This document shows, piece after piece, positions 3,821-64,000 of a DNA stretch of 64,000 nucleotides. The notes under the pieces were generated by a model that ran no database searches, was not told the DNA's origin, and saw nothing but the letters and a program-made list of their open reading frames with translations. Both the position numbers and the translations under genes were made by a program. The DNA is from Octopus bimaculoides (taxonomy: Eukaryota), in assembly GCF_001194135.2 (NCBI RefSeq), contig NC_068996.1, forward strand, positions 52,817,232-52,881,231, given 5' to 3'. Numbering within the stretch: the stretch's first letter is position 1; every line of letters starts with the position of its first letter.

Positions 3821-4827
3821 CACACATTTCGTCACTCAGGCTCATCATAGATTTTGCATAAGACAAATTCCTGCATGTTTTTCCGCTTTATTTCTTGCTC
3901 CAAATAGCTTATTTTTTATACCTAGCTCTATGTCTTTCTCCATTTCTAAGTTAAGGGTCAAAAATAAAGCAACCCTGTGAGACACAACTGATCTCTACAC
4001 ACAAATGCACAGAATAACAGCAATCAAATAACGACAGCAGAGTGCACCACAAACATCAGCGACCTGACTGTCGCCTGTACTCTTGACAAGAGATGCCAGT
4101 TAGTCTTTTACACCTACCAAGCTTGTTTGTATTAGCCCGAGTTGCATGACAATTTTTTGTTCCTTTAAGAATATTGTAGAACAGAAACTTTTCATAGATT
4201 GGAATTTAAATCCTAATATCTATAGAAGTTTATTGTTTCAAGAAAACAATGAATTTGAATTATTTTTAATTTTTATGATCATATTTAACAACTCNNNNNN
4301 NNNNNNNNNNNNNNNNNNNNNNNNNNNNNNNNNNNNNNNNNNNNNNNNNNNNNNNNNNNNNNNNNNNNNNNNNNNNNNNNNNNNNNNNNNNNNNNNNNNN
4401 NNNNNNNNNNNNNNNNNNNNNNNNNNNNNNNNNNNNNNNNNNNNNNNNNNNNNNNNNNNNNNNNNNNNNNNNNNNNNNNNNNNNNNNNNNNNNNNNNNNN
4501 NNNNNNNNNNNNNNNNNNNNNNNNNNNNNNNNNNNNNNNNNNNNNNNNNNNNNNNNNNNNNNNNNNNNNNNNNNNNNNNNNNNNNNNNNNNNNNNNNNNN
4601 NNNNNNNNNNNNNNNNNNNNNNNNNNNNNNNNNNNNNNNNNNNNNNNNNNNNNNNNNNNNNNNNNNNNNNNNNNNNNNNNNNNNNNNNNNNNNNNNNNNN
4701 NNNNNNNNNNNNNNNNNNNNNNNNNNNNNNNNNNNNNNNNNNNNNNNNNNNNNNNNNNNNNNNNNNNNNNNNNNNNNNNNNNNNNNNNNNNNNNNNNNNN
4801 NNNNNNNNATATACATACATACATACA

Positions 4828-5145: not shown

Positions 5146-5587
5146 TTAATGAATGGAGTAAAACGTATATGTTAACTGCATACTTTTATTTCCAACATAT
5201 GTTTCGAGGAATTACAATTTATACGATCCATAAGAATCGGCGATGTTAAAAATGTAAACTTCTCTTCAGGGAAATGCATGGGANNNNNNNNNNNNNNNNN
5301 NNNNNNNNNNNNNNNNNNNNNNNNNNNNNNNNNNNNNNNNNNNNNNNNNNNNNNNNNNNNNNNNNNNNNNNNNNNNNNNNNNNTATACATATATATATAT
5401 ATATATACATATAAGCCAAGAGAGTTAGGGGTTGAAGATCCAACCCACTAAGGGATAATATCTTTCCAATATACTGCTGGGAGGGTACCCAGTTATTGTT
5501 ACACTAGTGTTATACCATGTGCAATAAGTGGGTGCATACATACATATATAAATTTGACATGGGTGATTCTTTCTTGGTATATATATA

Positions 5588-6150: not shown

Positions 6151-7149
6151 GCGGTTTTTATTCTCGTCTCTGTTAGAGTGGATTTTTCCACTCACGAAAA
6201 ACAGACAGGAATTACGGCCTGCTTTTTATTATGTTCTTATATGTCGCATTCACACTCTCACATTACACATACATCTTTTATGCCACACANNNNNNNNNNN
6301 NNNNNNNNNNNNNNNNNNNNNNNNNNNNNNNNNNNNNNNNNNNNNNNNNNNNNNNNNNNNNNNNNNNNNNNNNNNNNNNNNNNNNNNNNNNNNNNNNNNN
6401 NNNNNNNNNNNNNNNNNNNNNNNNNNNNNNNNNNNNNNNNNNNNNNNNNNNNNNNNNNNNNNNNNNNNNNNNNNNNNNNNNNNNNNNNNNNNNNNNNNNN
6501 NNNNNNNNNNNNNNNNNNNNNNNNNNNNNNNNNNNNNNNNNNNNNNNNNNNNNNNNNNNNNNNNNNNNNNNNNNNNNNNNNNNNNNNNNNNNNNNNNNNN
6601 NNNNNNNNNNNNNNNNNNNNNNNNNNNNNNNNNNNNNNNNNNNNNNNNNNNNNNNNNNNNNNNNNNNNNNNNNNNNNNNNNNNNNNNNNNNNNNNNNNNN
6701 NNNNNNNNNNNNNNNNNNNNNNNNNNNNNNNNNNNNNNNNNNNNNNNNNNNNNNNNNNNNNNNNNNNNNNNNNNNNNNNNNNNNNNNNNNNNNNNNNNNN
6801 NNNNNNNNNNNNNNNNNNNNNNNNNNNNNNNNNNNNNNNNNNNNNNNNNNNNNNNNNNNNNNNNNNNNNNNNNNNNNNNNNNNNNNNNNNNNNNNNNNNN
6901 NNNNNNNNNNNNNNNNNNNNNNNNNNNNNNNNNNNNNNNNNNNNNNNNNNNNNNNNNNNNNNNNNNNNNNNNNNNNNNNNNNNNNNNNNNNNNNNNNNNN
7001 NNNNNNNNNNNNNNNNNNNNNNNNNNNNNNNNNNNNNNNNNNNNNNNNNNNNNNNNNNNNNNNNNNNNNNNNNNNNNNNNNNNNNNNNNNNNNNNNNNNN
7101 NNNNNNNNNNNNNNNNNNNNNNNNNNNNNNNNNNNNATATATATATATA

Positions 7150-8795: not shown

Positions 8796-9687
8796 ACAAG
8801 CACAGACACATTAAAGGATATATTCACGAAAGTATGAAAATGCTTTTGCTTTAAATTACACAATCCTAAGTGGATTGGAATGCTTTAATGCTAAATTGTT
8901 TTTAATAAATGTGATTGAAGACGGATGATACATTCACCAATGTTCAATTAAAATTTGTATCATATTTGGCTATGCTAGGCTGACAAACTTGATAACTCCT
9001 TCAACATAAATGTTTGGCTTAACTAAATGAGCCTAATTAGAGAGCTTGCTATTAATGGAACAAAATTAGGACACAAACATTTATTCTCAATTAAAATACT
9101 GCTAATGTTAGTCAAACTATGCTTTAGAACTTTGAGCATGTTATTTCCACAATTATTGTACATTAACGATGTGTACATGTTTCGAAATTTATATAACTGT
9201 CTATATTATGTAATGCTTACATATAAGTATGAAAGCATTTTTCTATGTTCACAGACATAAGACAATTGTCATACAACTAACAGTAAGCTGACCCTATTTG
9301 CATTTCTCTTAAGTAGGCATTCATATAATGCACACACCCACACACCCACACATCAGATGTGCGCGCACACACACACACACACATACTCACTCACCAATGC
9401 ACAAACATAACAAAGTAAGGCTGAATTGACTTACATTTATCTCATACCTACTTCTAAATAGATAATTTGTTATCTAAATAAGACCTATATTTCTCATCTG
9501 CTTTTGCTCTCTCTCTCTCTACTTAGTGATCTACCCACACAATGAACAACCCAAATGCTTTCTGTCTGTCTGACAGACTCTATGCATTTATGCATACATG
9601 GTTATGTGTATGCAAGCACACACACACACACACACAAACGCACATACATCACACACATACATACATCACACACACACACATATACAT

Positions 9688-9718
<31 letters not shown>

Positions 9719-9849
9719 ATACATCACACACACACACACACACATCACACTCACATACAGATGTATATGTACCTATATATGTATATATCTACTACATATG
9801 TGGGAAATTCTGTCTGTGGGTGTGTTTGTTTGTGGAGTTGTTAGTCAAC

Positions 9850-10687
9850 TCCTGCTACATCAGATTTTCCATCACCTTGTCCAGCAGTTGTCGGATGAAT
9901 TCTGGTGTATGGATGCAGTCAGAATGCCTTCTGTGTCCATTCCTGTTGGTCACCGCTTCACAGTCTCCTCTGCAATTGTCCATGTCAGCATTTACAGAGT
10001 TCAAAGTGCATTGAGCAGCAGTCATGATGTCAGCATTTTGATACCCAGNNNNNNNNNNAGAGCGAATCCTCATGCTACAGGTGTAAATAGTGAATAGTTG
10101 TCATAGAGACATTAGTCTCTCTCTATCACCTTTCAACATAATTATATATGAAGAGACATTGGAACAATTCAACAACATAATAAAAAAGTTTTATTTTTGA
10201 TGATGCTTGGTTGCATAAATCCTGTGTCACTCAGCGTAGCAGCCGCTGATTGAGTTGTAATCGGAATTGGAAGGTTAAGAGCTTCCTTGATGCCTGCCAG
10301 AGGAGCAAATAGCTATCATATCAATAGCATCGTGGTGAAAAGTGCTTCGTGGAGGAGAGAGGTGTTGTCACATCGAAGGTCTCAAGCTCAACTCGCCTAA
10401 CAAAGTGAAACTCACTGTTTAAGTACGAGTTTTACTACGCATGCGCAACTCGAGGGGCTTCCGGTGGAGAAGTCCTCTGCACATGCGCAGAATAGTACTT
10501 CCTCAATGGCGGCTATAATTTCGTGCCACTACACAGGTAACTCTGTTCCAGTATTCGGATGGCTTCCAGTCTTTCCGGTCAGCCAACTGCTTCTCAACTT
10601 TAATCATTATGCTCCACTTCAATACATCAAGCTGTTCATGGAAAAAGGAAACAATAAAACCATCAGATTTAGCCCAAACACCCTGTA
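9850..10687 (-). mobile_element. Left part of a Tc1/mariner (maT-like) transposon, split by a solo LTR
   Basis: TA-cagggtgtttgggctaaa end at 10687; KPSEYWNRVTC and MRIRSGYQNADIMTAAQCTLN match the uninterrupted copy at 17014-17470. Confidence 0.8.
10082..10533 (-). mobile_element. Solo LTR, 452 bp, with 4-bp target site duplication
   Basis: TG...CA termini; CAGG at 10078-81 and 10534-37; the empty site gttacctgtatcatgagg is seen near 17180. Confidence 0.88.
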
Positions 10688-12260
10688 TATACGCGTGTGT
10701 GTGTGTGTGCATGCGTCTGTATGTGTGCATGTACATACACACACGTGTGTTTGTGCATATGTGTATGCGTATTTGTGTCCTTGTTTGTGTGTGCACAAGT
10801 GTATGTGTGCATATTCATTAGCATTAAGATGTCTGCTTTTGTCTTTTTGAATTTTTTTCTTCCATATTGGGCTGGAAATGTCTACACCATGTCTGCAAGT
10901 CCCGATTTGTCTCAATTCTCTGCCATTAGATCTAATCCTATTGAGTAGGGTTACTATTGAGCGACCTTCAGCGCTTCTGTACTTTCCACTATCAATACAC
11001 CCCAGTTCTTCACCAGATTACTGTTAATCTATTAAATTGTTAATCTATTAGACTGTTATTCTCTCATACATTGACTTGCATCTGCATGTTCTCTTATTAT
11101 CTCTTTGCACAAGTCTCCCACAACCCGCCCTCACACACACATCCGCATTTAATGTTTTTTTGTGGGGGGGGGGGGCAACACTTCCTTTTACATGATCTAA
11201 GAAGGAAGCCTGCATGTGACTGTCTGACTCGCTAGATACGGCAGCTGAATCTCCCTGAAATCACAACCACCATCTTTGAAAATGACTTGTCGGATAGTGT
11301 GGTTCAGGTTCCTTAGATTAAACCACAAAAACTAAATATTCACACACACACACATGCATGTATGCATATACACACACAGAAATAAAACCAATCCAATGAA
11401 CCATTCAGCTGGAAAGTCAAAAGCTTGTGTTTATTATTCCAAACATTGATTTATTCGAAGAAACAGTAACCCATTTTGTTGTTATTTAACAGATTTCAAA
11501 ATTGCCCAAGATTCACTCATTGAATAATTTATCTTTCATATGTTATCTTTTGCTTTTTTCAGTCATTAGACTGTGGCCATGCTGGGGCACCACCTTGAAA
11601 ATTTTAGAGTCAAATAAACTGATCCAAGTACTTATTTCTACTATAAGCCTGGTTCTTATTCTATCATTCTCTTTTGCCAAACCACTAAGTTAGGGAGACA
11701 TAAACATACCAACATCAGTTGTCAAGCAGAGACAAGGACCAAACACAAACACAAACACACACACATATATTTGTAATAGGCTTCTTTCAGTTTCCATCTA
11801 CCAAATCCACTCACAAGTCTTTGGTTGTCCCAAGGCTATAGTAGAAGACACTTGCTGAAGGTGCTATGCAGTGGGACTGAACCCACTATCATGTGGCCCA
11901 GAAGCAAACTTCTAACCACACAGCCATTCTGCAAGTTAATTTTTTTTTTTTTTTTTTGTGAGAAAAATATGAATATTACAGAGTTTTGAAAAATTACCAT
12001 TTTATTAGTTATATGACTTTGAATAAACGTGAAATATGATTTTACTGAAATTATAATTACAGCTGGTTCTATTGGACTTATCTATAACATACAATGTTCC
12101 AATCAAGAATTAAGTGATGGGAGAATACATATACAGGAATCCCTAAAGACATCATGGTTACAGGTTCAGGGTCGCTGTGTGTGTCAAGTGTCTTCTCCTG
12201 TAGCCTCCGGCTGACCAAAGTATTGTGAGTGGATTTGGTAGGCAGAACTGGTGATGTTCC

Positions 12261-12680
12261 TAAAAAGGGACAGACAGAATAATCCTACAAAGGGACAGAT
12301 AGAATAAGCCTAGAAGTGGACAGATAGAATAATTCTAAAAAGGGACATATAGAATAAGCCTAGAAAGGGACACAGAATAAGCTTAGAAAGAGGAAAGAAT
12401 AAGCCTAAAAAGGGACAGAAAGAATAAGCCTAGAAAGAGACAGAGAATAAGCTTAGAAAGGGACAAAGAATAAGCCTAGAAAGGGACAGATAGATTAAGC
12501 CTTGAAAGGGACAGATAGAATAAGCCTAGAAAGGGACAGATACAATAATCCTAAAGAGGAATAGATAGAATAAGCCTAGAAAGGGCCATTAGAATAAGTC
12601 TAGAAAGGGACAGATTGAATAAGCATAAAAAGGGACAGATAGAATAATGCTAGAAAGGGACAGATAGACTAGCTTTAAAA
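12261..12680. repeat. Purine-rich minisatellite, about 24-25 bp unit (aagggacagatagaataagcctaga), roughly 17 copies
   Basis: Direct inspection; lies between two halves of a family B SINE. Confidence 0.9.
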
Positions 12681-14029
12681 AAAGTACTATAGTTGTATTA
12701 TTTGATTAAAAACTTCTTCAAGGTGGTGCTCCNNNNNNNNNNCTTCTGTAGTATGTCACAGTCTAATGGCTGAAACAAGTAGAAGATAAAAGAAATAGAT
12801 GTGATATTTGAAGAGAAATTTAGTGGAGCATCAGACAAGCTCTTATGGTTTACTTATTAGTAAAACTCAGCATTTCCACCAGCTGTGCTTTCAATATTGA
12901 TTCCAGATAAAAAGTGCAAGGCAACGATTTTGAGATAAATTTAAATGTGTCACCAGTTGAAATATGTCTGAGAGATATTTTTATGTACTATAGCATAGAA
13001 ATAAGAAAGTAGTTTTGTACCTTAGCTTCAAATAATATAAACAGATTAGAGGAAATTGAGATGGTCGTAACCTAGTTTTTGACAGAAAAACACATTAACA
13101 GACACGAACAGATTTTAGCCCTTGGCCTATCAGTCAAAGGTCAAAGCTAACTCCACCACAATAATCACTACAACATATCAAATATATGATAACTGCAGCA
13201 AGTATTAAAGTATTAGCAGTTTCTGGTTTGACCAGCTGCCACAGGCTGTTGTCAGCACAAACGCACATTGATACAAATAGAAAAACTATAGATTTTTGTC
13301 CGTCAAGAAGATCATTTTAAGCATTTTTCTTAATATTTCATCAGGATCAATAGTGACCCAGTCTAAGTCTCTCATAAGTAATAAATGAAGTTTTTCTTGA
13401 TCTCAGTTCTCTCAACCACTTCAATAGCTTTATTTCACCTTCTATCATGGACTCCCAAATGACTGTCATCATCACCATCATTCAATGTCTGTTTTTCCAC
13501 GCTGGCATGGGTTGGACGATTTGACATGAGCTGTTCAGGCTCCATGCCTGTTTCGGTATGGTTTCTATGGCTGGATGCCCTTCCTAATGCCAACCACTTT
13601 ACAGAGTGTACTGGGTGGTTTTATGCAGCACTGGCAAGGGTACTTTTTATGTGGCACCAGCACCCACGAGCCCACAAGATTAGGATCACTCAGCTGAAGT
13701 GGGATGCAGGGGACAAGCCTGTTTGCAAGGGCAACCATGATTTTACTTAGCTTCATGTGTCTTCTCAAGCACAGTAAACTGCCACATGTTTCAGTCCCTT
13801 ATCAACCCCTCTGTGAGTCCCAAAATCTGTAGCTCCTTTCTCACCACTTCATCTGTCACTTATTCTTGGGTCTACCCCTTATATATGTTCCCTCTACAAT
13901 TAGAGATCAACACTTCTTCATTCAACTGTCTTCATTCATACAGTATATCAAAAAATATGGTTTGCTCTTTTCAATAGTAACTGAAACTGATGCTTCAAAC
14001 AGAAGTGCAATAAAGAATTTCCCAATACT

Positions 14030-14235: not shown

Positions 14236-15272
14236 ATATATTTTGCATAATGCAACAGAATTTGCCACAGGAAAACTGAAATTTGATGTTGAAAATACTA
14301 AGCTCAAAGTGTAGTCATTTCAACATTTGAGCTTAAAAGAACAATATAACCCTCTAGCATTTGATCAGATTACATCCAGCCCATATACCCTACCTATTTC
14401 ATGTTCAAATTGGCTGTGTCTAGCCTCTCATACCTACCCTACAATGTCATTGTAAAAATAAACAATCACATCATCAAAATCGCTAAACTACAAAATAATG
14501 CACGACTCAGTCAAAACAATGCAAACAAATAAGAATTACATTTGACAGAATAATCCTTAACGCTGAAGAAATAAAAGGAATTTTAATGAATTCATGGCTG
14601 TTGATGGTTGCAGTTTGTGGTGATATGTTGTAACTAGAATAAGATAGCTCTCTCTTTTGCCATCTAAGTAATAGGAAGTCCTAAAATGTTATTTTCAGTC
14701 TATATGAGAAGGAATTTCCTCTACCTCACCATTTATAAAGGGTCACTTCTTAGATGAAGGGAATATCTGTGAATTACCACAAATTTATTTCTTCTTCAGT
14801 CTCAAACTTAAATTCTTCTGACACCATTGAAGAAGTAAAAGCCAAGTCATTCAGTATAGCTTCAATATTTAGCCTAATGGCTCAACTGAGAAGCAAATTT
14901 GAGAGAAGAATAAAGGAGTGACATTTTGCTGTTGCAGCAAATACCAAGCTTAGCCAGTTTACTCCTAGTGTATCAAAGAAATGAGAAGCAGATTTCATTG
15001 TTGTCTTTGAAGGAGCTATAAAGTACATAAATAACATGTATGATTTGCTACAAAAACTTTTCATAACTAATTATTAAAACTTTGCCAAACAGGTGCCAAT
15101 TCTTTTAGAAAATTCTGTAATGCAGCGAACACCTGCAGCCCTTAAAATATTGAAAAGGATGAATTTTAGGAAGTGTATTGCATTGTAGAGGCAATTATCA
15201 ATACTCCTGAGATGATAGATAGTCATAGTAAAGGACATTATCTCTTTGTGTGTGTGTGTGTATGTATGTATG

Positions 15273-15304
<32 letters not shown>

Positions 15305-15322
15305 TATATATACACATATATA

Positions 15323-16060
15323 CAGGGTGTGATGGGTAAATTGTTGCCATTTTATATTTTTAATTTCACACATGCACATTGTTTGTGTTTGATTTTGTCA
15401 ACTACACAGTAGGGTCAGTTGGGCACTGTCTATAAGAAAAACAGCACCATGATGCAATTCACTCAGCAGAAATTTGGAAACGACATGCTGTATTGCTTAG
15501 CATTCACACTGGAAGCTCCTATATGAACATTTCAGACTATTTGGGTATCAGTCTGAGGACATATACCCAGAGTGATAAAAATCAAACATCCAGTCAACAT
15601 CATGGTGTTTGGAGTGATCACTAGTGATGGCGACATTATGCCTCCATTTCTCTTCCCATACGGTGTCACACTCAACAGAGAAGCTTACATCAAATGCCTG
15701 GAGGAGGTAGTACTGCCCTGGTTCAAGAGGGTGGCTGCTGGAAGATGTTATGTTTGGCAACAGGGCTCTGCACCATGGCACACAAGCAGGAGGACCCAGT
15801 CGTGGCTGTCAGAAAATTTCTGCAACCACACCACTCCTAACATTTGGCCACTTAACTCCTCAAACTGGGACACCCTTGATTATTATGTTCAGTGAGGGAC
15901 CAACAAAACTCCTTGTAGCACCAAAGACAAACTGAAGGCAAGGATTATGGCAGCATTCACCAACTTAAAAAAGGAGACCATCCAGAAGAGTTATTGGGAT
16001 ATATATAGAGCTATGAAAGTATGGATGTCATGTTGGGCCCCCACTGGTTCAGCCCATCAT
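15323..16060 (+). mobile_element. Internally deleted maT/DD37D-like transposon (transposase C-terminal half)
   Basis: TA-cagggtg start; KHPVNIMVFGVITSDG...YVWQQGSAPWHTS...IWPLNSSNWDTLDYY matches the ITm catalytic motifs, with the Asp of QQD mutated. Confidence 0.85.
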
Positions 16061-16257: not shown

Positions 16258-16427
16258 GCACAGGAGTCAGGAGTGGCTGTGTGGTAAGTAACCTGCTTAC
16301 CAGCCACATGGTTCCAGGTTCAGTCCCACTCGTATGGCACCTTGGACAAGTGTCTTCTACTATAACCTCAGGCCAATCAAAGCCTTGTGAGTGGATTTGG
16401 TAGACAGAAACTGAAAGAAGCCCGGTG

Positions 16428-16462
<35 letters not shown>

Positions 16463-17013
16463 GTATATATATATCATCATTGATTAACATTCATTTTCCA
16501 TGCTGGCATGGGTTGGATGGTTTGACTGATGTCTGGAGAGCCAGCGGCTGCACCAGACTCCAATCTGATCTGGCAATGTTTCTACAGCTGGTTGCCCTTC
16601 CTAACGTTAACCACTCCGAGAGTGTAGTGGGTGCTTTTTACATGTCACAGGCACAGGGGCCAGTAAGATAAGCCTGGCAACGATGACGTTTAGGTGGCGC
16701 TTTTTATGTGCCACCAACACAAGAGCCAATCACAGGGCATTGACGTTGGTTGGTGCTTTATGCGTGTGTGTATGTTTGTGTGTCTGTGTTTGCCCCCCCA
16801 ACCATCGCTTGGCAACCGATGTTGGTGTGTTTATGTCCCCGTAACTTAGCAATTTGGCAAAAGAGACTGATAGTATAAGTACTAGGCTTACAAAGAATAA
16901 GTCTTGGGTCGACTTGTTTGACTAAAGGTGGTGCTCCATACTGGCCACAATCAAGTGACTGAAACAAGTAAAAGAATAAAAGTATATACATATATGTATG
17001 TATGTTTATGTAT

Positions 17014-17470
17014 ATGGGTGGTGTTCAGGCTAAATTTGATGATTTTTTTTTATATTCCTTTTTATGAAGAACAGCTTGATAAAACAGTCAACAGCATTGG
17101 ACAGCATAAAGATTAAAGTTGTAGTTGAGAAAAAGTTAGCTGACATGGGAAATGAGAAGCCAAGTAAATATTGGAACAGAGTTACCTGTATCATGAGGAT
17201 TCGCTCTGGGTATCAAAATGCTGACATCATGACTGCTGCTCAATGCACTTTGAACGCTGCAAAGGCTGTGAAATGTGACATGGATCAGCTACAACAAAAA
17301 CTATAAAGATGTGGCCAACAGGAATGGACACAGCAAGAGTTCTGACTGCATGTGCAGACCAGAATTTATACAACAGCTGCAGGACAAGGTAATGGGAGAC
17401 CTGAGCAAGGGAATCCAAGCTTTGGTGAGAGAGAAGATTGTAGGAGTTGCCTCCATGATGCTGGCCCTGA
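17014..17470 (+). mobile_element. Left part of the same maT-like family (N-terminal transposase remnant)
   Basis: MGNEKPSKYWNRVTCIMRIRSGYQNADIMTAAQCTLN; homologous to 9850-10687. Confidence 0.75.
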
Positions 17471-17879
17471 ATGTTATCTATTTGTGAAATCTATGGTTCT
17501 TTTTACAAACCTGAAGAAGACGAGTGCTTATGTCTTTTCTGTTCTATACAGCAATGGTCACACTTAGTGAATTTTTTTCAGTGGGGAACTCAGTTGGGGA
17601 ATCAAATGAAGCTGTCTGCAAGTGAACTCATTCAAAGCAGAAGAGTGCCCAGCCATGGGCAGAAATAAAGGGCAGAAATATACATAAATAAAAAGTGATA
17701 GCATGAAATTTCAACTCAGACTCAATGACCAGAGTTAAAAGAAAATATTCAGAATAATGAATAACTGAGTGGGAGAAATCACTGATTAATGATTGAATGG
17801 CTTGGTTTTTGCTGGATTAAAATAAGCATAAAATAGCATGTTAGAATTTTCATATAATATATAAATAATAATAAATGTG

Positions 17880-33727: not shown

Positions 33728-33753
33728 TTAGCCATATTTGTTGGCTACCCAGA
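33728..33753 (-). CDS. Syb: Syb alternative terminal exon 2, coding part (V)WVANKYG*
   Basis: ttttcatttctcttctctcatttgccatgcag|tc tgg gta gcc aac aaa tat ggc taa. Confidence 0.75.
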
Positions 33754-38083: not shown

Positions 38084-38100
38084 TTATGCGAACACCCAGA
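38084..38100 (-). CDS. Syb: Syb alternative terminal exon 1, coding part (V)WVFA*
   Basis: ctatttctttgtcttcctacctatgacag|tc tgg gtg ttc gca taa; strong pyrimidine tract; the phase-1 G from the TM exon completes Val. Confidence 0.7.
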
Positions 38101-43889: not shown

Positions 43890-43997
<108 letters not shown>

Positions 43998-44310: not shown

Positions 44311-44362
44311 CAATGATAATGATAATAATCACAAGTACAATGGTAACAAGAATAGCGATCAT
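44311..44362 (-). CDS. Syb: Syb alternative transmembrane exon B, MIAILVTIVLVIIIIII
   Basis: ctcttttacag|atgatcgctatt...attatcattg|gtaagt; same length (52 nt), phase and donor context (ATCATTG|GTAAGT) as exon A; 17 hydrophobic codons. Confidence 0.85.
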
Positions 44363-44628
44363 CTGTAAAAGAGAATTTCAAAAAAGCCAAAAGTGCAAAT
44401 AAATAAAAAAATTATAAGTAAAAAGAGATAACATTGTTTAACCTCTAAAAAGATTGACTTCAACATTACGAAAAAAAAGTTTAAATTAACTGATGCTCAA
44501 AAGCAGCTTAAATGCTTTCCGATTTTTTTTTTTTTAATTATCTTTTTAAATTTTGTCTCAAATTGAGTACATGAGCATTCTCATGAAATCTTATGATTAG
44601 CAATCTAATATAAGAGGTTAAAATTTCG

Positions 44629-44665
<37 letters not shown>

Positions 44666-45145
44666 GCGTGCAAGTGCAAGATAAAAAATAATGACATTCC
44701 AGAATATATTTCAAAGAAGAAGGAAAAGAAAAAAAAAAAAAAGAAAGAAAATGAAAGAATGAAAGAAAGATAGCAAATTTGCTTTGCGTGCTATGGGGAA
44801 AAAATTCAAATGCAAATTGTCAAAGTATATAAAACTTGAAATAAAATTTCTAAATTGGCATTCAGTGCTGGAGAAAAGAAAAACACTTTCAAGATGTCGG
44901 TTCAGTAACAATCAGCTTTCATCTGGTTGAAAGGTTATTTTTATTTCATTTTTTACCACTCAACATATTTTCATACAGTAACCCATACTTTCTGCTCGTT
45001 TTATAAACGATAAAATTTAAAACAAGCAGAAAATTACTGCATATCATACTGAGTGGGCAAAAAAAAAAAAAGTGTGATTTCCAGGAAGCTGTTGTAAACA
45101 AACTCAACAGGAAAGTGATTGATAATCGATGGCACCAGCACTTAC

Positions 45146-45197
45146 CAATGATTACAGTGACAATGGCTGCCACAATCGCACCAAGAATTATCATCAT
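45146..45197 (-). CDS. Syb: Syb transmembrane exon A, MMIILGAIVAAIVTVII
   Basis: aatttcag|atgatgataatt...gtaatcattg|gtaagt; 52 nt, phase 0/1; canonical VAMP TM segment. Confidence 0.95.
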
Positions 45198-46488
45198 CTG
45201 AAATTATTCAGTAATAAGGCTTCATGATTTATACCATGTTCATAAAATAATTCTACCAGGCTGTATACATTCTAAAATTTAAACTCCTTAATTATTGAAT
45301 TGAAAGAAAACAAAGAGAAGAAAGGAAATGGTCATCACATTTCATTTTTATATAAGATATGTGTTATGGATCAAGTATCCATAATTGAAGATCTTAACTG
45401 TTATCCTGCCAAATTACATACAAAGGCAAATTGAAGATAAGCTTCTTATGTCACTACTCATGGAGACAAAAAATGTAGCAGGGCACATCTAATTCGAAAT
45501 TATGTACAATTAAAAACAGAGTTTATTTAAAGCCACAATTGTAGCCTAATGTAATCTTATGAAAAGTCATGACTGTGGCTTTTAGCAGGGTAACAGTTAA
45601 TATTTTTGAAATAATTACAGAAAGTATGAGTCAACATATTTAATTATCTGAACACTATATTTTGTAAAGCTGTTGAAAGACTATTCTTACATGTATAAAA
45701 TAAAGTGCCAAGAACATTCTATAATGTAAATGAATACATTTTTAAAAAGAAATTTAAATACTTTAAAAAAATTTTTAAATGTTTTGTACACATTTTTTAA
45801 TCCAGAATAAGATTTCAAAATTAGTTCACAAATTACCAAGATATAAAATAAATTACTCTAACAGCTTTAAAGTCAGTTTAACTTAGTAAAATAATATACA
45901 GATTAACTATATATTTCATCATTTAACTGCCACTCTCCAAGCAAAGATGCATTGGAAGATTCAATAGGATCCAACAAATCAGAGGACCGTGACATGCTCC
46001 AATGTCTTTTATTGTGGTTTCCAAGGTCGGATACCCTTTCTAACAACCACTTGACAGAGCATACTGGTTGCATTTTCATGCTACCAGCAAGACTAAAAAA
46101 GAACTTAAAGTGGCCCCTAAAACTGAAGGAGACTTTAAGAGCGTAATAATTTTTAGCAAGGTAATGAAAGACAGTAAAGAATGATAAGAGGAACAGATTT
46201 TTAGCAGTGTGGTAGTAGTGGAGGAGGGAGTAGTATGGAAGGAAACAGGGAAAGGGAGGTCAGGGTCAATGGTTAGTGAGAAAGGAAAGGTTAGGATTGT
46301 GAAGGTGATGAGACTGGCTGTGTAGAGGGGGTATTCTGCATTATAAGGGTGAGTATGAACGGTAGGCTTGAGGGGAAGGGAAGATGAAAGAGACAAAATA
46401 GATGAGTGGCAAGAATCCATGAAGAGTCAATAAGAGGAGCAGGAGTTGTTGCGGACAGGCTGGTGTGGGAGAGATGGTGTAAAAGCTG

Positions 46489-46543
<55 letters not shown>

Positions 46544-47492
46544 NNNNNNNNNNNNNNNNNNNNNNNNNNNNNNNNNNNNNNNNNNNNNNNNNNNNNNNNN
46601 NNNNNNNNNNNNNNNNNNNNNNNNNNNNNNNNNNNNNNNNNNNNNNNNNNNNNNNNNNNNNNNNNNNNNNNNNNNNNNNNNNNNNNNNNNNNNNNNNNNN
46701 NNNNNNNNNNNNNNNNNNNNNNNNNNNNNNNNNNNNNNNNNNNNNNNNNNNNNNNNNNNNNNNNNNNNNNNNNNNNNNNNNNNNNNNNNNNNNNNNNNNN
46801 NNNNNNNNNNNNNNNNNNNNNNNNNNNNNNNNNNNNNNNNNNNNNNNNNNNNNNNNNNNNNNNNNNNNNNNNNNNNNNNNNNNNNNNNNNNNNNNNNNNN
46901 NNNNNNNNNNNNNNNNNNNNNNNNNNNNNNNNNNNNNNNNNNNNNNNNNNNNNNNNNNNNNNNNNNNNNNNNNNNNNNNNNNNNNNNNNNNNNNNNNNNN
47001 NNNNNNNNNNNNNNNNNNNNNNNNNNNNNNNNNNNNNNNNNNNNNNNNNNNNNNNNNNNNNNNNNNNNNNNNNNNNNNNNNNNNNNNNNNNNNNNNNNNN
47101 NNNNNNNNNNNNNNNNNNNNNNNNNNNNNNNNNNNNNNNNNNNNNNNNNNNNNNNNNNNNNNNNNNNNNNNNNNNNNNNNNNNNNNNNNNNNNNNNNNNN
47201 NNNNNNNNNNNNNNNNNNNNNNNNNNNNNNNNNNNNNNNNNNNNNNNNNNNNNNNNNNNNNNNNNNNNNNNNNNNNNNNNNNNNNNNNNNNNNNNNNNNN
47301 NNNNNNNNNNNNNNNNNNNNNNNNNNNNNNNNNNNNNNNNNNNNNNNNNNNNNNNNNNNNNNNNNNNNNNNNNNNNNNNNNNNNNNNNNNNNNNNNNNNN
47401 NNNNNNNNNNNNNNNNNNNNNNNNNNNNNNNNNNNNNNNNNNNNNNNNNNNNNNNNNNNNNNNNNNNNNNNNNNNNNNNNNNNNNNNNNNNN
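46544..47492 (-). other. Assembly gap, probably containing the missing Syb exon (about 80 nt, DALQAGASQFE...WWKNxK)
   Basis: The expected phase 1/0 exon between ELDDRA and MMIILG was not found in called bases 45198-49412; this is the only gap in that interval. Confidence 0.65.
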
Positions 47493-49412
47493 TTATGCAA
47501 CAAGATGGTGTAATAATTTTTAAGAAAAGATGCTTTTACATTCATCAGCTGTATTTGTTACAAATGAAATGGAAAAAATGTAATAGGCAACAGAGAGCCT
47601 GTCAAACAACTTCATTAAAAAGAATCATCAACCCAAGTTTATTCAAGTATTCTTTTCTGTCTGTTCCTGCACAACAACAGTTTACCAATACATCACACCC
47701 AAAATACTAAAATTACAGCTTTTTTAATGACCTATTTAATAATGTTTTCTCAATTCCTCATTTTATTTGTACTACAGGAAAATGTTGATAGCTTTCACAG
47801 ATCAACTGAGATTGGCAGGATTGTAACATATGTTTAGTAGAAACAGGAGGAAATTCTTGAGAATTGATATTCAGGAGACAAATAGGCAAGTTGAAAGTTC
47901 AGGTTGGGTGATGAAAAGCAGTAGGAGTGATAAGAAATTGATTCATTGGGTTAAGCAAGATTCAGAAAGGATATAGAACGTGTGTCAATCAGAAACATAA
48001 ATAGGGAAGTTTCACCTACACATAAGAAAACTTTTCACACACCCTACCCACAACAAACCAATCTACATCTCTGTATCATTACTATCCGGTAGCCCCCTCT
48101 TACTCTACATACCCAGGTTTTCACCTCTCACTTCCTCTCCCCACTCTCTAATTACACTTCTTTGGCGATATCCTGCCACTTATATTACGACCTTCAAACC
48201 TCAAAGGTATTCCCTGGCACTTGCCACCATCTATATCTATCTACCTTTACTTGACCATCCCATTTACATTCTGATCCCTGTTCCTTGTGAGTATGCCCGG
48301 CACTTTCACCACACTCTCCTTCTCCTGCACTTCCCTCAGGTTAGGTAACCATGTATCTCCTTTGCAGCAGCACACCCGTTTCTGTCCTTGTTCCTGATCT
48401 CTCTCTCTCCCTCTTTCCAGCTGGGTAACCATGTACCTCTGCTACAGCAAGACACCTGTTTGTGTCTCTCTGTCTCTCACTTTAACCTTTCATCATCACC
48501 TCCTCCCCTCTCAAAAGATCTTTGTCTTGCAGGTTACATGGTGACCCTGCCAGTGCAGGTATCACTTAAAAAGCATCCTATCAACACTGTAAAGTGGTTG
48601 GCATTTTGGAAGGGCATCCAGCTGTAAAAACCTTGCCTGTGCTTGTGCCATGTACAAAGCACTAAGTCCACTCTGCTGAATGGTTGGTGTTAGGAAAGGC
48701 ATCTGTCTATAAAAATCCTGCCAAAACAGCCACAGAAGTCTGGTGCAGGATGCTGCCTGGCCGGCTCCTGTCCCACCCTTGCCAGCATGAAAGGCAGATG
48801 TTAAACGATGATGAAAATATGTTATTGTAGAAAGGTCACAGCAACAAAGTGAAAAGAAGACAAGAGCTACGAGATGCGAACACTGAAGTCACCAAGACAG
48901 AAGACTTTAGGGAATGAGAAATAAACACTCTCAATGTAGGATTTATCACAGTTTAACAGTTGCAGGTATTTAAAGTGTTCAAAATGTGGTAGAGGGATGA
49001 GGAAAGTACATTGAATGAAAGTAATTGGAAATTTTTGATGCTGCTATCCAGATGAGAGACTGACTGCGCCATCTTTCAGAGTAAAGTTGGATTCGTGACA
49101 GTAAAGGTCAGCTAGAGACATCAGGTGAGAAATTTGTCTTGAATGCGAGTTACTTACATGTTAATATCAGATGAACAGAATCTAGGTAGATACACTATTA
49201 CTGACTCTCAGAATACATTGATTAAATTACACTATTTTTTAACAATATACCAAACAGAATTTTCAAGCCTGACTAAAACATTTTCACTTTCTTTTTATTA
49301 GATTCCAAATTAGCCAATTCTTTATTAACTCAGTCGTTTGGATGAGGATTTAGATAAATTGAAAAATTATATTTGCATGTCATGTAAGAAAAGAAATTTT
49401 AATAAAGCTAAC

Positions 49413-49491
49413 CTGCTCTGTCATCCAGTTCGGAGATTTTAGAATCTCTTTCCAAAACTTTATCAACATTCACGCGCATAATATCTACAAC
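49413..49491 (-). CDS. Syb: Syb exon, [26 protein letters not shown](D)
   Basis: tttcttcag|gttgtagat...gacagagcag|gttagc; 79 nt, phase 0/1; zero-layer Arg in VLERD. Confidence 0.96.
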
Positions 49492-49718: not shown

Positions 49719-49824
49719 CTCTTCAACTTGAGCCTGTGTTTGTTGCAACCGTTTACTTTGCTGGACAGGCTGAGGAGGGCCTTGTGGTGGGCCAGGAGGG
49801 CCACCAGGCTGTGGTGGGCCTGAC
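49719..49824 (-). CDS. Syb: Syb exon, SGPPQPGGPPGPPQGPPQPVQQSKRLQQTQAQVEE
   Basis: tttctttag|gtcaggccca...gttgaagag|gtaatt; 106 nt, phase 2/0; contains the start of the SNARE motif (RLQQTQAQV). Confidence 0.96.
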
Positions 49825-50635
49825 CTAAAGAAATATATTAAACAATAAATTAATACTTTGATTTTGAAATGAATTTAATCCAAAGCCAACATTTTTATTC
49901 AAATAAGTTTCATAATTTTGACACATCTTACTTTAAAGGGAATCTAATGCAAAAACTAACTGAAAGCAATCTGACAAAATTAGTTGATAACTACTTACAA
50001 AAGAAAGCCGATATTTTAGAGGAATAAAATAATTATCTCCTTAATGAATAATTTATTTTGACTATTCAAAATAAACTTTAATTAGCAAACAAACTTACGA
50101 AGCTAAAACACTTCATGTTTAATACTTAAGCAAGATTGGATTAATCATACTGTACATCCCCAAAAATGATAAAAGAAAAAAATTTTTTTGCAAGATATGA
50201 ATATCAAAAAGACAAGCATAACTTAATTTTTAGCAATGAAAAAATAGTAAATTTAATGTATTTTTTAAGACAATAAAATTATCTCGAATGATGATATTAC
50301 ATTAAACTAGAAACATTTCAACAACCTTATGGAAATCAATAAGATTTGCTACCTTATAACTGCTATAGAGAAACTGTTTCTAGAAATCAACTTAAAGAGA
50401 TTTTCATAAATATAAGATAAAAGAATCACAAAAAAGAAAAAATTATATAAAATCAAGATAGAAAGAGTACACATACTGGNNNNNNNNNNNNNNNNNNNNN
50501 NNNNNNNNNNNNNNNNNNNNNNNNNNNNNNNNNNNNNNNNNNNNNNNNNNNNNNNNNNNNNNNNNNNNNNNNNNNNNNNNNNNNNNNNNNNNNNNNNNNN
50601 NNNNNNNNNNNNNNNNNNNNNNNNNNNNNNNNNNN

Positions 50636-63829: not shown

Positions 63830-64000
63830 AAGAGAGAGATCCTGGTGTATGTGGGGGAAGGAGATGTCCCAGCCTATGTGAGGAGGGGAGAGGTGTCCCG
63901 GACTGTGGTGGTGGGGGAGAGAGGTGTCCCAGCCCATGTGGGGGAGAGAGGTGCTCCTGCCCATGTGGGGGGGGGAGGTGCTCCTGCCCATGTGGGGGGG
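63830..64000. repeat. G-rich minisatellite (cc(a/t)gcccatgtggggga..gaggtg), preceded by a GA-rich low-complexity tract
   Basis: Direct inspection; runs off the window end. Confidence 0.8.

Follow-up and report, generated by a model that had tools for sequence, protein, structure and literature searches.

The synaptobrevin gene in a 64,000-nucleotide (nt) stretch of the Octopus bimaculoides genome (contig NC_068996.1, positions 52,817,232 to 52,881,231; called the window here, with positions counted from its first letter) probably carries a mutually exclusive pair of exons, A and B, that encode alternative transmembrane (TM) helices. The pair as a whole is best explained as the local copy of a cassette that is widely found in animals. 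The window contains most of this gene, which lies on the minus strand and belongs to the synaptobrevin/VAMP family (brevin R-SNAREs). The tail-anchor helix would be encoded by two tandem-duplicated, mutually exclusive exons of 52 nt. A transcript that carries exactly one of them would stay in frame up to a short C-terminal exon, and its product would be a v-SNARE with a tail anchor. The cytoplasmic SNARE motif would be common to both products, which would therefore meet the same t-SNARE partners and differ only inside the vesicle membrane. The two exons are the following (a slash marks an exon boundary).

45146 to 45197, minus strand: TM exon A, 52 nt, cag/ATG…ATCATTG/gtaagt, type A (VAMP1/2-like), encoding MMIILGAIVAAIVTVII plus G.
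44311 to 44362, minus strand: TM exon B, 52 nt, acag/ATG…ATCATTG/gtaagt, second in tandem, Gly-free and Ile-rich, encoding MIAILVTIVLVIIIIII plus G.

The nucleotides of exon A (ATGATGATAATTCTTGGTGCGATTGTGGCAGCCATTGTCACTGTAATCATTG) and exon B (ATGATCGCTATTCTTGTTACCATTGTACTTGTGATTATTATCATTATCATTG) each translate into 17 residues with one nucleotide left over, which gives both exons a phase 1 end. An interval of 783 nt separates the exons on the gene's coding strand; 33 of their 52 nt are identical, as are 8 of the 17 residues (residues counted by hand). Equal length, equal phase and the similarity of adjacent exons characterize them as a tandem cluster. Exon A starts with Met-Met and contains one Gly and three Ala, exon B no Gly, one Ala and six terminal Ile. 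The acceptor tract of exon B (ttttggcttttttgaaattctcttttacag) has a higher pyrimidine content than that of exon A (gccttattactgaataatttcag). Both strands of the window were scanned for exons of the form AG/ATG-52 nt-/GT with an open frame that is at least 90% hydrophobic. The scan returned A and B only, with no third TM exon or further exon of this kind in the 64 kilobases (kb). Across 200 block shuffles, the strict form of the scan yielded no match and a looser form a mean of 0.025. Coordinates and scan bear out the initial annotation of this DNA, which had described two 52-nt exons starting with ATG after CAG acceptors and ending in ATCATTG/GTAAGT, and its Gly, Ala and Ile counts for both exons were correct on recount. 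It had further assigned both exons the phases 0/1. The phase 1 ends are read directly; the start phase is not, because the preceding exon presumably falls into an assembly gap (46544-47492), and phase 0 is consistent with the oyster Ostrea edulis, in which the juxtamembrane exon ends in phase 0.

The reading frame dictates how the two exons can be used. In-silico splicing was carried out with a placeholder for the missing upstream exon and with the phase borrowed from Ostrea. Inclusion of A alone or B alone leads to …KNCK-TM followed by VWVFA or VWVANKYG and a stop. Inclusion of both leads to TM-A and then to out-of-frame DDRYSCYHCTCDYYHYH…, a segment rich in Asp, Tyr, Cys and His, and the normal C-terminus is lost. 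With neither exon, the product reads KNCKSG… and is without an anchor. Since each TM exon is 3n+1 nt long, a productive mRNA needs exactly one of the two. Models with the double-inclusion frameshift are found for Magallana (P0019) and Physella (P0067).

Genomic DNA of four other invertebrates harbors tandem 52-nt exons at the corresponding position, with a second exon that starts with Met-Trp (MW type).

Ostrea edulis (locus L001): type A at 14013, MMIILGVIIAVIVIIII, then MW type at 16556, MWLILIAIIVIIIIIIV.
Ridgeia, a tubeworm (L003): type A at 15318, then MW type at 16283.
Aplysia (L006): type A at 14779, then MW type at 16019.
Argiope, a spider (L004): MIAIM… at 17379, MIAIMVGIGLIIVIIIA, then MWAIL… at 17635, MWAILIGVVLIIIIVIV.

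Eight exons were aligned with zero gaps, and AG/ATG and G/GT.AGT are invariant among them. The MW exon is second in tandem at all four fetched loci with the pair. Since the same tandem arrangement occurs at genomic loci of oyster, sea hare, tubeworm and spider, the cephalopod framing that was first given to the octopus pair has to be corrected. Judged by these comparisons, the octopus pair is not a cephalopod novelty and appears as an old, widely conserved animal cassette.

Protein models follow the same division. A search of protein entries in which the SNARE region joined to exon B served as query returned many invertebrate entries, and the following isoform pairs were identified for this gene. 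The accessions of each pair are consecutive and lie on the same contig, and its two members differ only in the 17-residue cassette.

Biomphalaria, XP_055863645.1/XP_055863646.1: type B is X1, MWLILIGVVVVIIIIIV; type A is X2, MMIILGAIIGIIVIIII.
Physella, XP_059148188.1/XP_059148189.1: type B is X1; type A is X2.
Aplysia, XP_035828734.1/XP_035828735.1: type B is X2; type A is X1.
Liolophura, a chiton, XP_064599343.1/XP_064599344.1: type B is X1; type A is X2.

RefSeq names the A isoforms of molluscs “synaptobrevin-like” and the B isoforms “VAMP3-like”. In Pomacea, a 2.5-kb Logan contig from run SRR23453228 holds an uninterrupted type-B coding sequence (B only), and type B is therefore transcribed in at least one mollusc, a gastropod.

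A separate observation concerns the spiders. The models P0008, P0010 and P0018 (Argiope, Larinioides and Trichonephila; locus L004) contain two consecutive copies of VV[GD]IMR[VT]NVEKVLERDQKLSELDDRA. The doubled segment looks like a second mutually exclusive exon pair, situated within the SNARE motif and mis-modelled with both copies.

Octopus exon B is likely orthologous to type B. It takes the second tandem position, lacks Gly6 and carries Leu-Val at positions 10-11 with a run of Ile after it. By hand count, MIAILVTIVLVIIIIII agrees with Aplysia B (MWAILIAVILVIIIIIV) in 11 of 17 residues and with the type A consensus (MMIILGAIIGIIVIIII) in 9 of 17. An orthology call at the nucleotide level was rejected, as the shared codon set brings all identities to about 60% and makes them uninformative; the assignment to type B therefore rests on tandem position and residue pattern.

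Several points weigh against the cassette reading in octopus. Exon B starts with Met-Ile (ATGATC), whereas Trp2 is present in every MW-type second exon retrieved from other taxa (Trp defines the class). Its nucleotide identity is about equal to octopus A (33/52), Ostrea B (31/52) and the first Argiope exon (32/52; the last two counted by hand). Protein queries with a 104-residue hybrid and with a 40-residue juxtamembrane/exon B/tail segment returned no full-length cephalopod synaptobrevin of either isoform, only the squid PDB chain P0017, which is devoid of the TM segment. Type-A cephalopod proteins are thus absent as well, and the absence is therefore not evidence against expression of exon B. 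A degenerate exon-B DNA pattern gave 0 matches in metagenome contigs. The window lacks the juxtamembrane exon as well as exon 1, and its two terminal exons are predicted. Double inclusion would place the stop codon in the last exon, so that nonsense-mediated decay is not an obvious filter on it. That octopus uses exon B at all we infer only from its open frame, length and splice sites, from the frame logic and from the orthologous isoforms. The initial proposal of exons that arose by duplication and are spliced mutually exclusively is strengthened by the frame, which breaks with both or neither exon, and by the single-cassette isoform pairs of orthologues, and it is qualified by this indirect case for exon B.

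Exon B could be a silent relic in cephalopods, with octopus making type-A protein only from this gene. The loss of Trp2, unlike in every MW-type second exon from other taxa, would fit a relic, and so would the lack of a cephalopod protein or transcript with exon B, which carries little weight given that type-A cephalopod proteins are missing too. However, exon B keeps an open frame, a length of 52 nt, its ATG, a strong polypyrimidine tract with CAG, a G/GTAAGT donor and a hydrophobic 17-mer, all of which are unexpected in an unused exon. No similarity was detected between the introns that flank A and those that flank B; the duplication is therefore old and not recent, and the relic is unlikely.

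The second alternative takes exon B as functional and derives it from an independent duplication of exon A in the cephalopod lineage, or from a replacement of the ancestral B, which would make it a parallel and not an orthologue of the Met-Trp exon. It draws on the Met-Ile-Ala start, which the first exon of the spider and the exon of Priapulus (MIAIM…) also have in place of Met-Trp, and on a nucleotide identity to octopus A that is no lower than that to Ostrea B. The same second position, length and phase, the missing Gly6 and the Leu-Val at 10-11 with its Ile run all match type B, though, and no residual intron similarity marks a younger event. The shortness and low complexity of the TM exons keep a tree from settling their origin; on the features listed, a separate cephalopod origin is improbable. 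A chance occurrence of an open, hydrophobic 52-mer with splice-like ends is effectively refuted, for although Ile, Val and Leu codons as well as the intron are AT-rich, none of the 200 shuffles produced a match, the window has only these two exons, with 783 nt between them on the gene's coding strand, and the same arrangement recurs in four other phyla or classes.

A counterpart of the A/B cassette is also seen in vertebrate protein models. In the hagfish Myxine glutinosa, proteins X1/X2 (P0031/P0124) and X3 (P0099) are identical except for the cassette and the junction codon, and the same applies to A0A8C4N592 and A0A8C4N573 (P0123 and P0126) of Eptatretus burgeri. The hagfish cassettes with their junction residue read MWAILAIVLVIIIVIII-I versus MMIILGVICALVVLVVI-L. 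Alternative exons thus seem to be retained in at least one vertebrate lineage, the hagfish, in place of separate genes for VAMP2 and VAMP3 or in addition to them. Vertebrate VAMP1-3 had been stated at the outset to have a single TM exon, which, given the isoform pairs of the two hagfishes, holds at most for jawed vertebrates. In the latter, the VAMP1/2 anchors are type A-like (MMIMLGAICAII…, MMIILGAICAF…). The VAMP3 anchor of a shark is type B-like (MWAILIAVVLIIIIIIV), which explains the RefSeq name “VAMP3-like” of the mollusc B isoforms. In the brittle star Amphiura filiformis (L005, 33587-33704), a single type-A anchor continues from the juxtamembrane exon with no intron in between, and the scan picked up no second TM exon; the pair is therefore not universal in deuterostomes.

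On the simplest reading of these distributions, an old cassette would have persisted in hagfish and in several lineages of protostomes and would have disappeared or been resolved in other animals. The resemblance across taxa may alternatively be a product of convergence between helices of low complexity. A more far-reaching scenario can be put forward tentatively, as plausible yet somewhat less than probable. The pair would go back to a single proto-VAMP gene of the bilaterian ancestor and would have been kept by molluscs including octopus, annelids, chelicerates and hagfish. In jawed vertebrates, it would have been split after genome duplication into VAMP1/2 (A) and VAMP3 (B). The octopus locus would then supply a synaptic-vesicle and a cellubrevin-like v-SNARE by a cell-type-specific choice of helix that tunes the fusion pore.

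The two helices differ in properties that would be relevant for such tuning. Exon A encodes a central Gly and four small residues, exon B no central Gly and one small residue. The mean hydropathy is 3.75 for exon B versus 3.03 for exon A, and the number of beta-branched residues is 13 versus 10. Within the TM domain's N-terminal half, 4 of 9 residues are beta-branched in A and 6 of 9 in B (hand count). Swaps of natural v-SNARE TM domains shift fusion-pore kinetics as the beta-branched content of this N-terminal half predicts, and anchors with low beta-branched content are associated with small synaptic vesicles, those with high content with large granules (PMC7239655). The pore also changes when another residue takes the place of the central Gly in VAMP2 (PMC5460238). 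The analogy would make A the isoform of synaptic vesicles and would assign B, with faster expansion of the pore, to a cellubrevin-like or large-vesicle role. The suggestion in the initial annotation that one gene could supply two biophysically different anchors was right in its count (B is more beta-branched and has no Gly) and agrees with these studies (PMC7239655, PMC5460238); the effect on the pore is an analogy.

The other parts of the octopus gene that could be assigned are listed below.

49719 to 49824, minus strand: coding exon, (S)GPPQPGGPPGPPQGPPQPVQQSKRLQQTQAQVEE, ending in …GPPQPVQQSKRLQQTQAQVEE; N-terminal proline-rich region and start of the R-SNARE motif; acceptor ttag/G, donor GAG/gtaatt.
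49413 to 49491, minus strand: coding exon, 26 residues plus 1 nt, including the 0-layer Arg of the R-SNARE motif; acceptor cag/G, donor G/gttagc.
46544 to 47492, no strand: assembly gap of 949 N, putative site of the missing exon DALQAGASQFEASAGKLKRK[FY]WWKNCK.
38084 to 38100, minus strand: candidate coding exon for an alternative terminus, ag/TCTGGGTGTTCGCATAA, which would give (V)WVFA and a stop; assigned from the required phase and the acceptor.
33728 to 33753, minus strand: candidate alternative terminal coding exon, cag/TCTGGGTAGCCAACAAATATGGCTAA, predicted to give (V)WVANKYG and a stop.

The identity of the gene is evident from its SNARE exons. The 0-layer arginine that is expected within …SELDDRAD… is present, as ISELDDRA is encoded at the end of exon 49491-49413. 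Joined together, the two SNARE exons (61 residues) match Pfam PF00957 with E=9.1e-11 and 41.9 bits against a cut-off of 26.4. They are identical, over the segment compared, to the crystallised synaptobrevin of the squid Doryteuthis (chain P0017), and a query composed of the two SNARE exons, a guessed juxtamembrane segment and exon B shows 99% identity to this chain over 77% of the query length. A and B each provide 17 hydrophobic residues in front of the short predicted tails VWVFA and VWVANKYG, as in a tail anchor.

The juxtamembrane frame DALQAGASQFE…KRK[FY]WWKNCK was not found in the readable sequence of 45190-49420. Its counterpart in Ostrea and Ridgeia lies 0.5-0.9 kb upstream of exon A. 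With the 949-N gap at the expected juxtamembrane site, gene models on this assembly would be broken or without that exon. A (GA)n microsatellite (46491-46543) adjoins the gap, and another one (43895-43997) is located downstream of exon B. Both candidate terminal exons open with TCTGGGT behind good acceptors, and the split codon is completed as Val. The predicted tail VWVANKYG resembles the mollusc tails AWVASTYG, VWLATTYG and VWLYNKFG; the terminal exons of Ostrea encode AWVASTYG (L001:20514) and VWAVADQKNKSSG (L001:27068), each followed by a stop. The choice of the C-terminal tail may constitute a second, independent layer of isoform diversity.

Besides the synaptobrevin gene, no further substantial reading frame was found in the window. 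Other N runs are located at 120-129, 4295-4808, 5284-5383, 6290-7136, 10049-10058, 12733-12742 and 50480-50635. Tandem repeats unrelated to the exon pair are a 25-nt unit repeated 17 times (12259-12668), a 66-nt unit repeated 3.5 times (924-1153), a (CA)n tract (9617-9759) and, where the window ends, a G-rich unit of 27 nt (63849-64000).

The introns around exon A contain an element that could bear on the choice between the exons.

44965 to 44994, minus strand: downstream inverted-repeat arm with its partner at 45618-45647; the arms bracket exon A and share an 11-base-pair perfect core (CAUACUUUCUG/CAGAAAGUAUG).

Inverted repeats also bracket exon A in oyster (L001, 13627-13652/14439-14464) and in tubeworm (L003, 15269-15282/15496-15509). 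Pairing of the arms in the pre-mRNA would place exon A in a loop and favor exon B, which is an unverified lead; the repeats may equally be chance matches in AT-rich introns. Separately, the A-B intron contains poly-U and CU-rich tracts (44630-44790, minus strand), including a T run of about 30 nt and ttctttctttcattctttcattttctttc…. These long tracts are situated 270-430 nt upstream of exon B and resemble the sites bound by polypyrimidine-tract-binding splicing repressors.

In the full-text literature, no description of a TM-exon cassette was found for the synaptobrevin of any animal, with most subscription papers outside the coverage of the search. Papers on Tritonia and on squid editing mention synaptobrevin and do not describe the cassette. 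Cassette isoforms are already present in the RefSeq and UniProt models of many species (snails, oysters, chitons and hagfish). The remark that the cassette is undescribed in cephalopods is accordingly in line with the literature, but isoforms of this kind had already been modelled in databases for other animals.

The role of the v-SNARE TM helix in fusion is debated and has been studied mainly with artificial mutants and cross-paralogue chimeras (PMC4972536, PMC5460238, PMC7239655). A natural switch of the 17-residue anchor alone, with the SNARE motif unchanged, is a ready-made experiment. The contrast between A and B shows which features of the TM domain selection has kept apart, namely a central Gly with small residues versus an all-beta-branched helix. 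In species that have giant synapses, the cassette would let expression and rescue be tested one isoform at a time. For annotation, octopus synaptobrevin needs two TM isoforms, and a model that contains both exons is an artefact with a shifted frame. What gene duplication does in some lineages (VAMP2 versus VAMP3), alternative splicing may do in others. The wider pattern, an ancient anchor-swapping cassette that would mirror the VAMP2/VAMP3 split, is more interesting than the octopus pair itself.

Among known systems, the closest are the mollusc genes with isoform pairs. Like octopus, they have tandem 52-nt exons that start with ATG and end in phase 1, with type A (MMIILG…) first and a Gly6-free, Ile-rich exon second, and they have alternative short C-terminal exons including a …YG tail. 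Octopus differs from them in the Met-Ile-Ala start of exon B (Met-Trp in the others), in the Ala-Ala and Thr of exon A (Gly-Ile and Ile in the others) and in a shorter A-B intron (783 nt versus 1.2-2.5 kb in Aplysia and Ostrea). The mollusc isoforms are modelled, with genomic support for the pair in Ostrea, Aplysia and the annelid Ridgeia; the octopus pair is known here from genomic exons. The hagfish VAMP isoforms share the A/B dichotomy and the 17-residue TM cassette with octopus; they are known as protein models only and belong to the vertebrate lineage, so that any homology would be very deep.

In terms of gene architecture, the octopus pair fits best among the tandem mutually exclusive exon clusters, with exons 5a/5b of SNAP-25 as an analogue. 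The latter likewise form a tandem, same-length, mutually exclusive pair in a neuronal SNARE gene and change a membrane-proximal segment. Exons 5a/5b alter the palmitoylated linker and part of the t-SNARE helix, whereas the octopus pair would exchange the whole TM helix of the v-SNARE. VAMP1/VAMP2 and VAMP3 of jawed vertebrates resemble the A and B isoforms in that their SNARE domains are near-identical and they differ mainly in the anchor. Among jawed vertebrates, each anchor presumably has a gene of its own, whereas in octopus the two would be alternative exons of one gene.

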